A DNA stretch of 64,000 bases, taken from positions 248,001 through 312,000 of the IMG/VR virus record IMGVR_UViG_3300043418_000072; one strand, written 5' to 3'. A model generated the notes under the pieces. It had not been told where the DNA came from, searched no databases, and saw nothing but the letters and a program-made list of their open reading frames with translations. Positions 33,435-47,896 of this stretch are shown here, in pieces; within the stretch, counting starts at the first letter, position 1; every line of letters starts with the position of its first letter. The position numbers and the translations under genes were made by a program.

Positions 33435-34336
33435 TGGAGGACTGAGAATACATCTCTCCCAACAACACCTCGGACATTATTACGATCCTTGCGAGACCGC
33501 TTTCTTCCGACTTCCACTAAACCCTACTTGCATAGTAGTCTAGTCTGCTGTCAGCATCGCCGTTTTTAAAGACAGGCAGTAGTCTTGTCGCCATATGCTA
33601 TTCTACGCTTTCTATCCCGTTGACCTTTAGAGCCATTCACCACCGCTAAGTAGCTACGAAACTTCCTGCATAAACAGATTTCACCTTGCGAGTTACGTCT
33701 GACTTAGTTAGCTTGCGCCCTAAGTATTAGATGCTTTTCACATATGACCGAGTCAGTCTTTGCGTTTTGTAATGATAGCGGGAATTGAACCCGCCGCATT
33801 CTGTTTAAGAGACAGACGTTCTACCAATGAACTATATCAACCTACTGCGATGTGCTGACTCAGTTGCTGCATACTCTTTTGGAATACACAATACAACACA
33901 CCACGTACCTTTTGCCTTGCGAGCTACTCAGTCGTCTTTTGCGACCAATGTTCGTATTACTACGTCCACCAACCACTAAAACTGCATACGAGCTCTTAGG
34001 TGCAACCCTTCGAACCAATACACTACCCTTTCTCATACCAATTAACAAAGTTGGTTTCGCATAGAAGTCAGCACCACCTGTTACTTTCCATCTACTCAAG
34101 TTCCCCTTGATGCAATCTCAGGCTTGTAAGCAAACGTTCTTCCCTATGCACTTTGCGTCACTGTTACAACCACCCGTCGCTGAGTGATCGCTCCCTCACA
34201 GGAGTGAGCAGGCTTGTCTAAACGAACTATTGCTAGCGGAGTTATGTAGGCATACCTCCTTTGGCTGTGTCACCACAGTTATTCTTCGCATCAAGCTGGG
34301 CGAACCATACTCTTTGCAGGACATTAAACTGCCCCA
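33435..34336 (-). ncRNA. Probable GOLLD large ncRNA with embedded tRNA
   Basis: ~900 nt without a credible ORF inside a phage tRNA island; several GCAA-capped hairpins; 3' TGTATTCTCAG end recalled from GOLLD; internal tRNA. Confidence 0.7.
33770..33841 (-). tRNA. tRNA-Lys(CTT) embedded in GOLLD, no CCA
   Basis: Normal D, anticodon and T arms; weak acceptor terminus; no encoded CCA. Confidence 0.7.
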
Positions 34337-43400: not shown

Positions 43401-44609
43401 TTATTTTGTTTGTATAGAGAATACGTCTGTAAACGATTCGCCCCTAATAACATCATACTTCTTTGTATAGTCAAAGAATGCAGATGGCATATTTGGCGTT
43501 AATGTTGATAACGCTTGTTTCACATTTAGTAGCTCAGTAACCAATACTACATAATTTGGTGCAGTTAGTATTTCAACTGCTTTGTTAATTTGCTCAATTG
43601 CCCGGCCCCGCAGTTGATTAGGCAAGTTGTTAAAGTTCATGCCTGGCGGAGAAGTTACGTTATAGCACTTCACGCCAATGGTGTTGTTTTCGTTATATAG
43701 CCGCATCAGGAACGTTGCTGTTTCTGCAAAATCCATTAAACTATATGCAGATATTGCTGTTGTAACTTCCATCTTAAACGGCGATTGAAGTTGGTTAAGT
43801 CTAAGTACGTTACTTTCAACTTTTGGCCAATCTGTTCCGCTGCGAATATATTCTGCCGATTTACCCACTGCGTCAATGCTCATTACCATCTGCACTGTTT
43901 TAAATTTACTAAGACGGTCAACAAACAATGGGTTATACACACTGCAATTGGTGTATAGCTCTAGGTTAATTTCTTTGTTGAATCCGTTATCTATTAGATA
44001 ATCAAGGTAGTCGTAATATTCTTTTATTAAGAATGGTTCCCCACCCGTTAAGCATACTTTCCATACTGAGGCCAAGAAGGCAGGGTCCTTAAGACCCTCA
44101 ATAGAATTGCTTTCAATTTTTGTAATAGGTATCACACTGTACTCAATGTGGCTACCTTCTTTATCTGGTTTAATGTTGTGCTGAATCTTTTCTGCTGCAA
44201 AGCTAGAGCTAGATGTTTCATCGCACATTCTGCATTTCATGTTACACAGATTACTAAATCTAAGTTCAATGCGGCCCGGTACTGTCGGTGTGTCGGCTGT
44301 AAATTTATTTGCAAACCATTGATCTTCGTACTCGGGTTCTGGGCCTACATTATAGTAATTCCAAATTGCGCCGCGTGTGCTTTTTAGCCCCATGTCTTCT
44401 TTTGTCTTGCAGCCGCCACATGCAGTTGGGGCAGTGCCACTCAGCATATCTGTCTTCATCTGCTTGAGCCAATCACTGTTGATATACTCAGCGGGTGTCA
44501 TGCCAGACTCTAAGTTCTTGATGTAATGACACGGACTAGGAGAGTTGGCGTGATAGTACATCATTGTCCACGGTGCTGGGCAAAAGAACTTCTCAGAAAA
44601 CTTTGCCAT
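43401..44609 (-). CDS. Radical SAM enzyme with N-terminal twitch-like domain
   Basis: FCPAPW..PC..CGGC, CNMKCRMC, TGGEP. Confidence 0.9.
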   Translation of the reverse strand: MAKFSEKFFCPAPWTMMYYHANSPSPCHYIKNLESGMTPAEYINSDWLKQMKTDMLSGTAPTACGGCKTKEDMGLKSTRGAIWNYYNVGPEPEYEDQWFANKFTADTPTVPGRIELRFSNLCNMKCRMCDETSSSSFAAEKIQHNIKPDKEGSHIEYSVIPITKIESNSIEGLKDPAFLASVWKVCLTGGEPFLIKEYYDYLDYLIDNGFNKEINLELYTNCSVYNPLFVDRLSKFKTVQMVMSIDAVGKSAEYIRSGTDWPKVESNVLRLNQLQSPFKMEVTTAISAYSLMDFAETATFLMRLYNENNTIGVKCYNVTSPPGMNFNNLPNQLRGRAIEQINKAVEILTAPNYVVLVTELLNVKQALSTLTPNMPSAFFDYTKKYDVIRGESFTDVFSIQTK

Positions 44610-44625
44610 TATGGCTCCTGTATTA

Positions 44626-44701
44626 TGGTGCCTCTAACCGGATTCGAACCAGTGACACAAGGATTTTCAATCCTCTGCTCTACCAACTGAGCTATAAAGG
44701 C
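44626..44701 (-). tRNA. tRNA-Phe(GAA)
   Basis: Canonical cloverleaf. Confidence 0.9.
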
Positions 44702-44801
44702 AAATTTAAATGGCATTGTGGGTTCCTACCACACCTGAACCTTGTTCCACCGCTCGTTCAAAGACTTATGTGGCGATCCCGTGCATTCGCATTACACCAT
44801 A

Positions 44802-44920
44802 CCATATAGAAGCACTCTCAAATGCAGGCATAGGAGGAGTCAAGCTCTGAAACTTTCGCATCTGCAGATACTAGGCTTCTTCTCCCGCTTTGACTTATGC
44901 CAAGAATACTTCTATATAGG
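44802..44920 (-). ncRNA. Stem-closed small RNA
   Basis: ~15-bp terminal duplex ATATAGAAG.A.TCT; inner GGCATA/TATGCC helix. Confidence 0.4.
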
Positions 44921-45142
44921 CTCCACCGTTAACGACAGCATTCGTCCTGGCTTTATTTTATGTCGGTTAATGCACGGTGGACACACATGCCGACGGGGTT
45001 ACAGTTTCAATGATGGGATTCGAACCCACTAACTACCCGTGCGCTGCGGGTTGTGCTACGCTCAATATAAAACTGGTTTACTCTGTTTCGAACCAGACCA
45101 ACAGTATATCTTTGCACTATCTTTCCATGTCGTCTTCATTGT

Positions 45143-45245
45143 TACCATATAGAAACACACTATGTGGAATCGAACCACTGACCCTTTCACTCCGTAGAGA
45201 CCGTGCAATACGCTTAGTCGCCGACTAGTATGTTTTTATATGGTA
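45143..45245 (-). ncRNA. T-arm-containing RNA on long stem
   Basis: 20-bp imperfect terminal inverted repeat; GTGG-TTCGATT-CCAC. Confidence 0.5.
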
Positions 45246-45318
45246 GAAGCACTGGGGCTCGAACCCAGGACCCTCGGATTAAAAGTCCGATGCTCTAAAC
45301 CAACTGAGCTATACTTCC
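45241..45318 (-). tRNA. tRNA-Lys(TTT)
   Basis: Canonical cloverleaf. Confidence 0.9.
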
Positions 45319-45325
45319 ATGACCT

Positions 45326-45456
45326 TACCATATCAAAGTACGCTACGGAATCGAACCGCAGTCGTCAACCTTTCCCTCCAGGGCAATTGATACAATTATA
45401 GCTTCCACAGGAGCGACCTGATTCACTATAATGCACTAGCGTACTTTGATATGGTA
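45326..45456 (-). ncRNA. T-arm-containing RNA on perfect 20-bp stem
   Basis: TACCATATCAAAGTACGCTA perfect inverted repeat; CGG-TTCGATT-CCG. Confidence 0.5.
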
Positions 45457-45526
45457 GGGGCACAGAGAATCGAACTCTGGTTCTCTGGTTAAAAGCCAGA
45501 TACTTTAGCCGCTAAGTTATACCCCC
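45452..45526 (-). tRNA. tRNA-Lys(TTT), second copy
   Basis: Cloverleaf with CCA. Confidence 0.9.
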
Positions 45527-45529
45527 ATA

Positions 45530-45604
45530 TGGTCCACAGCCAGAGAATCGAACTCTGTTAGCCCGGGTAAGAGCCGGGTACTTCGCCAGCAAAGTTTGCT
45601 GTGG
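45530..45604 (-). tRNA. tRNA-Lys(CTT), atypical
   Basis: A8 instead of U8; loop CT-CTT-AC; CCA. Confidence 0.75.
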
Positions 45605-45617
45605 ATGGATTCGTAAA

Positions 45618-45692
45618 TTACTTTTCTTTTACGTGCCATCCAGGACCATACGGGGGTCTAGGATGACACTATCGTTTACCTGAACGTTTCAT
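45618..45692 (-). promoter_or_regulatory. Mini-ORF MKRSGKR-UAG followed by a strong hairpin
   Basis: AAGGA RBS, ATG 45692, TAG 45669-45671, hairpin 45633-45669, in-frame TAA at 45618. Confidence 0.45.
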
Positions 45693-45706
45693 GACATTTT
45701 TCCTTT

Positions 45707-46378
45707 TTAATTCCAAAGTAAGTCAAAGTTGCCAGCTAACACTTTCTTAACGCTTGCAGTCTTGTCACTTACGTGATCTTTAACTGTATCGTCTTGAAAG
45801 CGGTATGTGCGAATTTTGTCTCCTCGCATCCCTGAACCAACTTGTTGCTTTCTGTTGCTTGCTAAGTTGTTATTATAACAGTCTTTTGTTATCTTGTCAA
45901 CTCTTTCTCTAATAGTTTGCATGGCTTCTGCCAAACTATTTTCCCTACTGCGGCACTGTGCTGTTACTACTGTGCCGCTAGGTACGTGCGTAACACGGGC
46001 ACTGTTTTGGTGCTTGTTACGGTGTTGTCCTCCTGCGCCTGTTCCGCTGTACCATTCAATCTTCAGATCTGAGTCAAGAATAGCAGTGGTCGGCACACTT
46101 GGATCAACGACAGCGACAGTAACGGTACTAGTATGTACTCGTCCTTTTCGCTCAGTTGGTGGTACACGCTGTATTCGGTGTCCACCTGGCTCGTTGTATA
46201 AGCCAGATAAATCAGCACCCTCGACTAAGATATGAACTTCGCCAAGATACTCATTTATCAGGCGGCTAGTTCAGCCCTTGCTGTGTGCAAATTTAATGTA
46301 GGCTTGCGCCAAGTCTTTTACAAATAGTTTACTGTCTTCGCCACCTTCTGCGGCACGGACTTCAATTACACGTTTCAT
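45707..46378 (-). CDS. RF1-like peptide chain release factor lacking domain 1, with in-frame UGA at codon 36
   Basis: EVRAAEGG, KG*T, GGHRIQRVPPTERKGRVHTS (PxT), GAGGQH, KIRTY; the frame is continuous across TGA 46271-46273. Confidence 0.85.
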
Positions 46379-46703
46379 ATTCATTTTTCTCTTTTAATCG
46401 CATAGCTTCTAATCTTGCTTTCAAGAATAGTTCAACTACATCTTTATTTAACTTAGTAAATCCTGTCTTGATTAGAAAGAACAATTCGTCTTTTTCTGAC
46501 TCAAGCCATACCACGTGAGCATCACCTGTATTGCCCACTGCCCCAAGTCCTTCGGGGTTGCTGAATCTCTGTGCCGCGTTACAAATGAACGCAAACTTTA
46601 CCCCAAAGTCCCTTGATAGTACTTCTGGACCAGTGGCCTCACCTTGGGCAATCCGGTACACATAGTTGTACTCGTACGGAACGTCAACGTAGACTTTGTG
46701 CAT
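46362..46703 (-). CDS. Hypothetical protein
   Basis: 113-aa coupled ORF. Confidence 0.55.
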   Translation of the reverse strand: MHKVYVDVPYEYNYVYRIAQGEATGPEVLSRDFGVKFAFICNAAQRFSNPEGLGAVGNTGDAHVVWLESEKDELFFLIKTGFTKLNKDVVELFLKARLEAMRLKEKNEYETCN

Positions 46704-47206
46704 TAGATATCACCTTCGTGGCTTGGGGGTAAAATGATACCACCTGCGCTGTATTGGTATGGTTGACCATTGATTGTTGGCTCTTCGTTCTCATCGTATG
46801 TCCATCCCAGATGCTTCATCATGCGATGCTTGACTAGCAAGTTAGGAGCACGAAATGCTTCAGTGTCATCAAACCCAAGCATGACCCCAACTTCACAAAC
46901 TGCACCACTGCGGCAAACACCGGCATGGCAGTGAACAATCACGTTCATGCGATTCTCTAGTGCATGTTGCAACAAACGAACTAGCTCCGCAGCTTGCTCG
47001 TGACTGCAACGCATTTCTTCTTCAAGAACGTAGTCCTTTTCCTCTACATCGAGGAACTCAAATTGATGAACTTCTCTAAACTTGTAAAGGGGGGTAGGAC
47101 ACTCGCTCCCGCAGTCAACAATTTGAATCAACATAGCGTTATCACCGGGGTTTATGTGAAACCCTTTAGTGACATCGCTACGTGCTACGTTTTGGATCCA
47201 GGGCAT
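46703..47206 (-). CDS. Cys-based tyrosine/dual-specificity phosphatase
   Basis: VHCHAGVCRS (CX5R); start MPWIQN. Confidence 0.85.
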   Translation of the reverse strand: MPWIQNVARSDVTKGFHINPGDNAMLIQIVDCGSECPTPLYKFREVHQFEFLDVEEKDYVLEEEMRCSHEQAAELVRLLQHALENRMNVIVHCHAGVCRSGAVCEVGVMLGFDDTEAFRAPNLLVKHRMMKHLGWTYDENEEPTINGQPYQYSAGGIILPPSHEGDI

Positions 47207-47231
47207 TTTGTTTCCTTGTGTTAAATACAGT

Positions 47232-47408
47232 ATGAGCAAACCCAATCCTGGATTCGATGAATTACTTAAACTCGGCAACGGAACTTATTCCAATGCTAAG
47301 AGCTTCTCTTGTGTTAAACATTTTACACGAGATTATCCTGAAAAGCAAGATTTGCCTTTTGTACAGGATATGAAATTCTGGCAGAGGATAGTGGAATCGA
47401 ACCACTAA
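47232..47408 (+). CDS. Possible small late protein (58 aa)
   Basis: TAAATA just upstream of the ATG; overlaps the tRNA remnant. Confidence 0.25.
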   Translation: MSKPNPGFDELLKLGNGTYSNAKSFSCVKHFTRDYPEKQDLPFVQDMKFWQRIVESNH

Positions 47409-47412
47409 TGAC
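47379..47412 (-). pseudogene. 3' half of a tRNA (Gln-like remnant)
   Basis: T arm, acceptor 3' strand and CCA only, abutting the intact tRNA-Gln. Confidence 0.6.
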
Positions 47413-47490
47413 TGGCAGGGGTTATCGGATTCGAACCGATGATACTAATTTCAAAGACTAGTGCTTTAGGCCAAACTAAGCTAAACCCCA
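47413..47490 (-). tRNA. tRNA-Gln(TTG)
   Basis: Loop CT-TTG-AA, G73, CCA. Confidence 0.85.
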
Positions 47491-47494
47491 ACAA

Positions 47495-47896
47495 TTATCT
47501 ATATTTTTCCAAGTTGTTTAATGTCCATCTACCGACATTTTTACCTTTATTTCTACCAGCAAATGTATCTGTTTGACTATGGCAGTTAGGACATAATAAT
47601 CTTAGATTATCTAGTTTATTATTACTTGAGTCACCGTTTATGTGGTCCACTTGACACTTAATTGGACGACTGGCCCATTCGGATATTCCGCAAGTGGAAC
47701 ACTTGTTACCAAATAAACTCATTAACACACTGTATATTGTTGGCCGATTTGTTATTTGCCCATCAACAATAAGTTTTTTATTTTCTGCTAATACCATACT
47801 AGATTTATGCTGACTCTGGCATGCGTGATTACAATAAACTCTCTCTTGTGTTGAATATCTTGGTATGATTTCTTTTTTACAATTTAAGCATAACAT
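47495..47896 (-). CDS. HNH endonuclease
   Basis: CSTCG...QVDHING..NN...NLRLLCPNCHS; preceded by TATAAATA at 47917-47924. Confidence 0.9.
   Translation of the reverse strand: MLCLNCKKEIIPRYSTQERVYCNHACQSQHKSSMVLAENKKLIVDGQITNRPTIYSVLMSLFGNKCSTCGISEWASRPIKCQVDHINGDSSNNKLDNLRLLCPNCHSQTDTFAGRNKGKNVGRWTLNNLEKYR

Follow-up and report, generated by a model that had tools for sequence, protein, structure and literature searches.

Does a reading frame of only seven codons, which ends at the foot of a hairpin and is followed by tRNA-Lys genes, act on these genes, and if so, how? The question arises in a 64,000-nt stretch of DNA (hereafter, the window) that corresponds to bases 248001–312000 of the 354-kb IMG/VR virus record IMGVR_UViG_3300043418_000072. 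The record is rated complete by CheckV, has 43.5% G+C, and contains 49 tRNA genes plus a tmRNA. An initial annotation based on the sequence alone described a Shine-Dalgarno (SD)–led MKRSGKR-UAG mini-ORF with a stop-adjacent hairpin located between a release factor gene and three tRNA-Lys genes. It proposed that this is a translation sensor of Lys/Arg supply or UAG termination efficiency that controls synthesis or processing of the tRNA-Lys block.

We first reexamined the sequence, and the described features were all found to be present. On the minus strand, AAGGA lies at 45705–45701, and the ATG at 45692–45690 is followed by AAA CGT TCA GGT AAA CGA and by TAG at 45671–45669. A 37-nt hairpin, H1, spans 45669–45633 and starts with the G of the UAG. 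It consists of a 9-bp lower stem with one G·U pair, formed by the 5′ arm GUGUCAUCC (region 1, 45669–45661) and the 3′ arm GGAUGGCAC (region 2, 45641–45633), a 2-nt mismatch, a 4-bp inner stem (GACC/GGUC), and a 7-nt loop CCCGUAU (45654–45648). The 108-nt intergenic RNA folds at −24.8 kcal/mol (z = −3.06), and 1 of 200 shuffled sequences folds as well. A second ATG (45639–45637) is located in the 3′ arm of the hairpin, and readthrough of the UAG would give a 24–amino acid product ending at TAA 45620–45618. The upstream gene (46384–45707) is RF1-like: it matches the Pfam PCRF and RF-1 families, and its best solved-structure matches are RF1 (4e-33). ARAGORN calls three tRNA-Lys genes downstream, with anticodons CTT (45604–45530), TTT (45526–45452), and TTT (45318–45241). 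The second of these scores 66.2 bits with the Rfam tRNA model (RF00005). The first, tRNA-Lys(CUU), whose CCA is encoded, has an unusual core (A8 and a D arm ACUU/AAGU) and is not reported by the Rfam model even at E ≤ 10. The model is also silent for locus L083 (L numbers denote fetched IMG/VR loci), which has the same D-arm type, but gives 49 to 59 bits for homologs in L017, L087, L092, and L159, and the cloverleaf has many compensatory changes across the family. The two models thus leave the recognition of this gene as a standard cloverleaf undecided, and we treat it as a real but unusual tRNA.

Conservation of the mini-ORF, UAG, and hairpin downstream of release factor homologs had been named beforehand as the way to judge the element. 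To assess it, we fetched 80 IMG/VR loci through the RF protein. Only in the four closest ones (L002–L005, 83 to 100% identity) is the RF gene followed by the element; their mini-ORFs differ (MKRSGKR, MKRIAKM, and MKRKSRKL), yet each ends in TAG fused to a hairpin with the same outer stem and the same loop core. A DNA pattern built from these invariants matched at least 120 IMG/VR contigs, giving 104 distinct instances, of which 103 are real. When TAG was dropped from the pattern, only chance matches and one true variant, L220, in which TAG is replaced by CGAG, were added (133 TAG matches against 1 in the fetched loci). In the 596 billion bases of prokaryote genomes, the strict pattern was found 33 times; 31 matches are unrelated chance occurrences, and 2 are short phage-like contigs in metagenome bins, one of them labeled Polynucleobacter. 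A blastn search of 50,697 isolated phage records with the leader returned nothing, and a 1.6-kb query matched only tRNA-Lys genes. Rfam scans of 44000–47600 (E ≤ 1) and 45400–45720 (E ≤ 10) gave only tRNAs. A covariance-model search of the window's genome found a single copy; IMG/VR as a whole and metagenomes were not scanned with such a model. The second tRNA-Lys(CUU) gene, at 33769–33841, has no leader. Overall, the feature is far beyond chance, and the element belongs to a conserved, previously undescribed leader present in about a hundred versions in uncultured freshwater phages.

We next asked whether the mini-ORF behaves as a translated frame. All 102 complete versions have an ATG in frame with the TAG and no internal stop, and their lengths are 6, 7, 8, 9, or 10 codons, so that every length change is a multiple of three. 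An SD core lies 4 to 7 nt upstream of the ATG in 93 of 99 versions; it is mostly GGAG, 6 to 7 nt before the ATG (52 of 99 have GGAG at spacing 6, which is optimal), and only 6 of 99 lack an SD-like core. Codon 2 is AAA in 98 versions and AAG in 3. Codon 3 is Arg through the synonymous CGT, CGA, CGC, and AGA. The penultimate codon is AAA in 102 of 102, and the last codon begins with C in 100 but encodes R, L, Q, or P. The genome itself uses AAA and AAG about equally (2563:2421), and TAG ends only 17 of its 261 long ORFs. This is the signature of a translated frame in which the position of particular codons, not the peptide, is under selection, although no expression data prove translation. Other explanations for the conserved codons exist. 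AAA at codon 2 is a general enhancer of initiation, a basic penultimate residue is reported to favor termination, and TAG could be fixed simply because its G is the first base of the stem. Since only two Lys codons are involved and both positions have other possible explanations, their presence upstream of tRNA-Lys genes does not settle whether they are regulatory codons cognate to the product. The other reading frame features in the note did not hold across the family. The buried second ATG disappears wherever GGATGG is replaced by GGTTGG. The readthrough frame is not kept open: a new stop comes three codons later in 41 of 97 versions, stops are not depleted relative to the other frames, and the continuation after UAG is not conserved in any frame.

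The linkage of the leader to tRNA-Lys is tight. In 95 of 104 instances, tRNA-Lys(CUU) starts 24 to 31 nt after the hairpin (about 27 nt), and tRNA-Lys(UUU) usually follows about 3 to 6 nt after it. The third tRNA-Lys is not part of the unit. The upstream neighbor varies and can be one of many different tRNAs, a TTGTATAAT promoter, or, in the four closest relatives only, the RF gene. In the 80 loci chosen through the RF gene and not through the leader, 12 of 12 tRNA-Lys(CUU) genes carry it. Across about 2000 tRNA genes of related loci, SD-led mini-ORFs precede 92% of Lys-CUU genes but only 0 to 10% of every other tRNA species, and no other recurrent peptide appears; a recurring MQESAKL ORF turned out to be the anticodon arm of tRNA-Cys. 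No other tRNA in the window is preceded by anything similar.

To find out what the hairpin might do, we searched for alternative partners of its strands. H1 itself, which pairs region 1 with region 2, is supported by 87% of paired cells in the alignment, and one column pair (60–89) switches between UA (16), AU (14), and CG (1). Region 2 is also complementary to region 3, CCAUCCA (45608–45602), which comprises leader positions −4 to −1 and nucleotides 1 to 3 of tRNA-Lys(CUU), that is, the RNase P cleavage site. The resulting 7-bp helix B, with UGGAUGG (45642–45636) as its 5′ strand, has the family consensus (U/G)GG(A/U)UGG with CCA(U/A)CC(A/C). Two positions covary, A/U with U/A and U/G with A/C (GGATGG/CCATCC, GGTTGG/CCAACC, and GGGTG/CACCC). 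One of the helix B pairs is only U·U or U·G in H1 and therefore supports helix B specifically. Three columns, one each in regions 1, 2, and 3, covary together, and tRNA nucleotide 3 also covaries with its acceptor-stem partner. Regions 2 and 3 are connected by a small A/U-rich hairpin, H2 (GUAAA...UUUAC, 45632–45613), whose pairing is weakly conserved (58% of cells, with a GC-to-AU change in 6 sequences). H2 is duplicated in L084, L152, L157, and L177, and yet region 3 stays next to the tRNA and stays complementary.

A longer complementarity, helix A, involves ACCCCCGUAUGGUCC (45657–45643), i.e., the end of the inner 5′ arm, the loop, and the inner 3′ arm of H1. Its target is GGACCAUAUGGGGGU (45535–45521), which contains G71 G72 A73 CCA of tRNA 1, the spacer UAU, and nucleotides 1 to 6 of tRNA-Lys(UUU). 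Helix A is an ungapped 12- to 18-bp helix in 86 of 92 versions. Loop length classes (UAU, UAUU, UAUAU, and UAUAUU) match the spacer length classes in 88 of 93, and changes in the 5′ acceptor strand of tRNA 2 are compensated in the leader, for example, GGAGG with CUUCC. The leader G lies opposite U in 77 and opposite C in 11 of the 88 length-matched versions; therefore, the pairing makes sense only in RNA of the tRNA-sense strand. In a 35-sequence alignment, 88.8% of helix A cells are paired, with compensatory changes at 7 pairs. Helices A and B together (the "clamp") are 88.3% paired, against 30 to 55% for slid controls, and have 9 compensatory pairs, a number reached by 3 of 500 shuffles, and a covariation score reached by 0 of 500. 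RNAalifold run on the same alignment returned the lower stem of H1 together with the tRNA cloverleaf. Both states therefore carry evolutionary support, as a switch predicts, although the covariation rests largely on a few two-state positions that may reflect few independent events; a phylogeny-aware test (R-scape) was not applied to the whole family. A further possible helix involves region 0 (45697–45691; AUGUCAU here and AUGACAU in most relatives), which includes start-codon bases and is complementary to the invariant GUGUCAU of region 1. The best helix is (A)UGACAU with GUGUCA(U) in most versions (mean of 5.7 bp against 4.4 for a reversed control), with one central mismatch in the window. 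Since region 1 is invariant, there is no covariation, and this helix is tentative.

The clamp is the predicted minimum-energy fold of the full unit in 91 of 92 versions; in the window, it scores −88.5 kcal/mol, against −80.1 kcal/mol with H1 forced. The strands of H1 are transcribed about 110 to 130 nt before the target of helix A, so H1 should form first. Prefix folding intended to mimic the cotranscriptional order was uninformative because cutting tRNA 1 frees its 5′ strand. A ribosome with UAG in its A site protects about 12 to 15 nt from the first base of the P-site codon, which corresponds to the nine bases of the H1 5′ arm, and when these bases were blocked, H1 was lost and the fold became the clamp. 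With the invariant AAA in the A site, the first base of H1 is at about +12, just outside the helicase site, as follows from toeprint and helicase work. However, in the constrained folds, a ribosome parked at the penultimate AAA also gave the clamp as the minimum-energy fold. The computed thermodynamics therefore do not separate the two ribosome positions, and the model needs kinetics. Nearest-neighbor energies also ignore tRNA tertiary structure and modifications, and the clamp might form without any ribosome or never compete with folded tRNAs.

These results suggest, and we propose with moderate confidence, that the region is the leader of a two-gene tRNA-Lys(CUU)/tRNA-Lys(UUU) transcription unit and works as a ribosome-operated RNA switch. 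In one state, H1 would form, both tRNAs would fold as cloverleaves, and their ends would be free for RNase P and 3′ trimming. In the other state, H1 would be open and the clamp would partly unzip both acceptor stems and bury both RNase P sites and the RCCA end that bacterial RNase P contacts, which is why we take the clamp to be the nonprocessable state. A ribosome waiting for Lys-tRNA at the invariant AAA would leave H1 intact at the mouth of its mRNA channel, while a ribosome reaching the stop codon would favor the clamp; once free, region 1 could pair around the start codon and shut off further initiation. Our preferred reading is negative feedback on lysine decoding, in which fast decoding of AAA traps the precursor, whereas scarce Lys-tRNA(UUU) or poor translation leaves time for the tRNA-Lys pair to be matured. 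The conservation, the reading frame, the linkage to tRNA-Lys, and the alternative helices with their covariation come directly from the sequence comparison; translation of the ORF, the choice of state by the ribosome, the block of processing by the clamp, and the sign of control are our deductions from them. The interpretation given in the initial annotation is thus partly supported. Its core idea, that a translated mini-ORF with a stop-adjacent hairpin acts in cis on the tRNA-Lys block, is backed by the comparative evidence, but several of its specifics are not conserved, and the sequences do not distinguish Lys-tRNA supply from UAG termination as the sensed variable.

The main alternative, which we consider less likely, is an RNA-only processing or folding scaffold. 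In this view, the clamp is a stalk bracketing tRNA 1, like the stems flanking rRNAs, that is cut by a double-strand–specific nuclease or orders maturation of the dimeric precursor, while the mini-ORF only loads ribosomes to stabilize the transcript or keep Rho away. This agrees with the clamp being the predicted ground state and with the about 21 to 25 stacked base pairs of helices A and B centered on the inter-tRNA spacer, and the H1 loop could act as a toehold, so that no ribosome is strictly needed. Yet helix A consumes mature nucleotides of both tRNAs and competes with the native folds rather than flanking them, and the invariant AAA-CNN-UAG-stem spacing, the frame conservation, and the covariation of regions 1 and 2 are left unexplained. 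A sensor of UAG termination, somewhat less likely still, would respond to ribosome dwell time or readthrough at UAG, as set by host RF1 or the phage RF1-like protein and by the phage's own amber-suppressor tRNA. UAG is essentially invariant in the leader despite being rare in the genome, and dwell time at the stop is exactly the period during which the 5′ arm of H1 is masked. The genome encodes an RF1-like factor with a conserved in-frame UGA and a canonical tRNA with anticodon CUA, and four related loci carry such a tRNA; a termination-sensing variant stays open because the phage encodes these two factors. Conversely, the G of UAG is structurally fixed, so no RF1-specific selection is needed, the RF gene is adjacent only in the closest clade, the readthrough frame is closed after three codons in many versions, and there is no genome-wide TAG recoding, with only one in-frame TAG junction found between long open segments.

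Two other possibilities appear very unlikely. A functional cationic micropeptide, with the hairpin merely stabilizing or terminating its message, is consistent with M-K-R at the N terminus and K at position −2 being kept at the amino acid level. However, its length (6 to 10 amino acids) and other residues vary freely (MKASAKQ, MKQGKQ, and MKLGKP), no terminator follows, and the covarying complementarity to the tRNA ends is not explained. A DNA-level inverted repeat serving cassette exchange is suggested by the tRNA-Lys(CUU) body being more variable than its flanks, by metatranscriptome and metagenome contigs that join the flanks across unlike tRNA bodies (joints 45535 to 45622/45625), and by rearrangements at this site in L004 and L105. 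The complementarity, however, tolerates G·U but not A·C, which fits RNA pairing on the tRNA-sense strand only, and the ORF is not explained.

We compared the element with characterized leader systems. As in ribosome-mediated transcription attenuators of amino acid operons (trpL, hisL, pheL, and leuL type), an SD-led short ORF with a maintained reading frame, carrying codons for the amino acid concerned although their regulatory role is not settled here, precedes a chain of mutually exclusive helices (here 0:1, 1:2, 2:3, and 3:4; H1, helix B, and helix A are each 87 to 90% paired, with compensatory changes and three-way covariation), with 1:2 and 3:4 paired in the no-ribosome state and the outcome set, in our model, by the position of the ribosome. 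However, no terminator-like site (a G+C stem followed by a U tract) was found in 45150–46450, where H1 is followed by GUAAAAG and helix B by the tRNA. In addition, the last helix is a tRNA acceptor stem, the products are tRNAs rather than enzymes, the ORF stops at the very base of helix 1:2 with only two cognate codons, and an extra long-range helix reaches the second tRNA. Like T-box riboswitches (RF00230), the leader is a cis-acting RNA specific for one amino acid and contains UGGN pairing with the NCCA end of the cognate tRNA: UGGU lies opposite ACCA of tRNA-Lys(CUU) inside helix A, and these pairs are invariant (GC, GC, and UA, 35 of 35 each). The leader does not match the T-box model, lacks the Stem I and specifier architecture, pairs in cis with the unprocessed precursor including spacer bases, involves a ribosome and an ORF, and precedes tRNA rather than aminoacyl-tRNA synthetase genes.

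In translational attenuation leaders (ermC, cat, and cmlA type), a ribosome on a very short ORF likewise melts the 5′ arm of an adjacent hairpin and frees the 3′ arm for another partner; here, no ribosome-binding site or start of a downstream protein gene is sequestered, since the buried ATG and downstream frames are not conserved and the next genes are tRNAs. No drug-dependent arrest motif can be tested. Leader-trailer pairing in tRNA and rRNA precursors, such as the stems flanking 16S and 23S rRNA, also controls access of processing nucleases over long range, but here the pairing invades the mature ends of two tRNAs, competes with an upstream hairpin, and is coupled to an ORF. Lambda bar minigenes and the short ORFs reported in the T5 tRNA region are SD-led ORFs of a few codons in phage DNA, some within tRNA gene regions; no conserved stop-overlapping hairpin or complementarity to tRNA ends has been described for them. 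A prfB-type autoregulatory recoding site, with an in-frame stop within a longer ORF, a slippery site, and an internal SD giving a frameshift, does not fit: the mini-ORF is a separate seven-codon frame without a conserved continuation. Bypassing of the T4 gene 60 type was dropped since matching take-off and landing codons were, by eye, not consistent between the window, L004, and L005.

Known ribosome-sensing leaders control transcription termination or translation initiation of protein genes; we know of none that controls the folding or processing of a tRNA, and full-text literature searches found no description of a leader ORF controlling tRNA maturation. If the model holds, this compact and very well conserved element shows how large phages with their own tRNA sets tune individual tRNAs, that attenuator logic extends to stable RNAs, and a possible link between codon-level sensing and the arms race around tRNA-Lys. 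It also marks an unannotated RNA family for Rfam-type curation. The most far-reaching reading, which is possible but doubtful, is a new kind of gene control, leader-peptide control of tRNA maturation, in which ribosome speed on an AAA codon decides whether the phage's own tRNA-Lys precursor is released for processing or locked by a cis-antisense clamp, giving the phage a lysine-decoding homeostat. tRNA-Lys(UUU) is the classic target of abortive-infection anticodon nucleases. Phage tRNAs are proposed to counter such defenses (PMC10264068), and the switch could therefore turn on replacement tRNA-Lys exactly when the host cuts its own.

As to expression of the unit, a consensus sigma-70–type promoter (TTGACA, 17-nt spacer, and TG-TATAAT; 12 of 12 hexamer matches plus TG) is located at 45900–45872 on the minus strand, inside the 3′ part of the RF gene. 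It is the likely start of the leader/tRNA-Lys transcript in this genome, although its assignment to the unit is inferred; many relatives carry TTGTATAAT 30 to 40 nt upstream of the SD instead. A sigma-54 promoter suggested by TGGCAC was rejected since, by eye, the −12 TTGC element is absent. Four metatranscriptomic libraries contain the leader, with summed word depth 10 to 100 times that of the adjacent RF gene; these are assembled contigs pooled over related phages that may include DNA, raw reads were not mapped, and the data show presence only and not transcription, ends, strand, or the two conformations in vivo. In L105, the body of tRNA 1 is deleted, but the leader, region 3, an acceptor mini-helix, the junction, and tRNA-Lys(UUU) remain, which hints that the UUU tRNA, the only reader of AAA, is the essential target.

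The RF1-like gene (window 46384-45707, minus strand) contains an in-frame TGA after codon 37 (..HSKG TGA TSRLI..), at window positions 46271-46273. Across the related loci L002-L081, the TGA is present at the same place in 78 of 78 relatives that could be read. The encoded protein lacks RF domain 1 and has PPT at the position of the RF1 PxT motif. The TGA looks like a conserved recoding or autoregulatory stop. The coding sequence of the same gene also harbors, at window 45872-45900 (minus strand), a perfect extended sigma-70 promoter (TTGACA, 17 nt, TG-TATAAT; 12 of 12), which is located about 180 nt upstream of the mini-ORF. In one relative, L004, there are two copies of the leader (L004:3653-3778 and L004:4562-4687). 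One copy lies upstream of the RF gene and is followed by a tRNA-Lys(CUU) truncated after the anticodon arm, while a diverged one lies downstream of the RF gene, suggesting that the RF gene was inserted into the leader/tRNA-Lys unit with partial duplication.

Outside the window, the phage genome encodes a canonical tRNA with anticodon CUA, an amber suppressor, at G000:C1:174391-174465 (positions 192-266 of the extracted locus L289, minus strand). ARAGORN labels it "tRNA-Pyl," and it scores 66.7 bits with the Rfam tRNA model. Four related loci (L085, L152, L164, and L197) also carry a CUA tRNA; there is no sign of genome-wide TAG recoding. A permuted (two-piece) tmRNA of betaproteobacterial type, with the tag ANDSQFLMVA, is encoded at G000:C1:179583-179981 (positions 184-582 of the extracted locus L290, minus strand), as identified by ARAGORN and by the Rfam models tmRNA_permuted (110.9 bits) and beta_tmRNA (110.2 bits). 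One leader-bearing contig was binned with Polynucleobacter. Together these observations hint at a betaproteobacterial host.

The gaps between called tRNAs at window 45319-45451, 45148-45240, and 45003-45140 (minus strand) hold tRNA-like sequences with a GGTTCGAWTCC T-arm and long terminal stems that are called by neither ARAGORN nor Rfam. The first of these folds into a four-way junction closed by a 14-bp stem (−43.6 kcal/mol, z = −3.29), while the other two are not significant by energy. The tRNA-Lys(CUU) at window 45530-45604 (minus strand) has A8 and the D arm ACUU/AAGU, and it escapes the Rfam tRNA model. The same D-arm type in the related locus L083 also escapes the model, while other types in relatives are recognized. 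The body of this tRNA is far more variable in the family than its flanks. A second tRNA-Lys(CUU) gene in the same genome, at window 33769-33841 (minus strand), has no leader, and a covariance-model search of the whole genome found one leader only.
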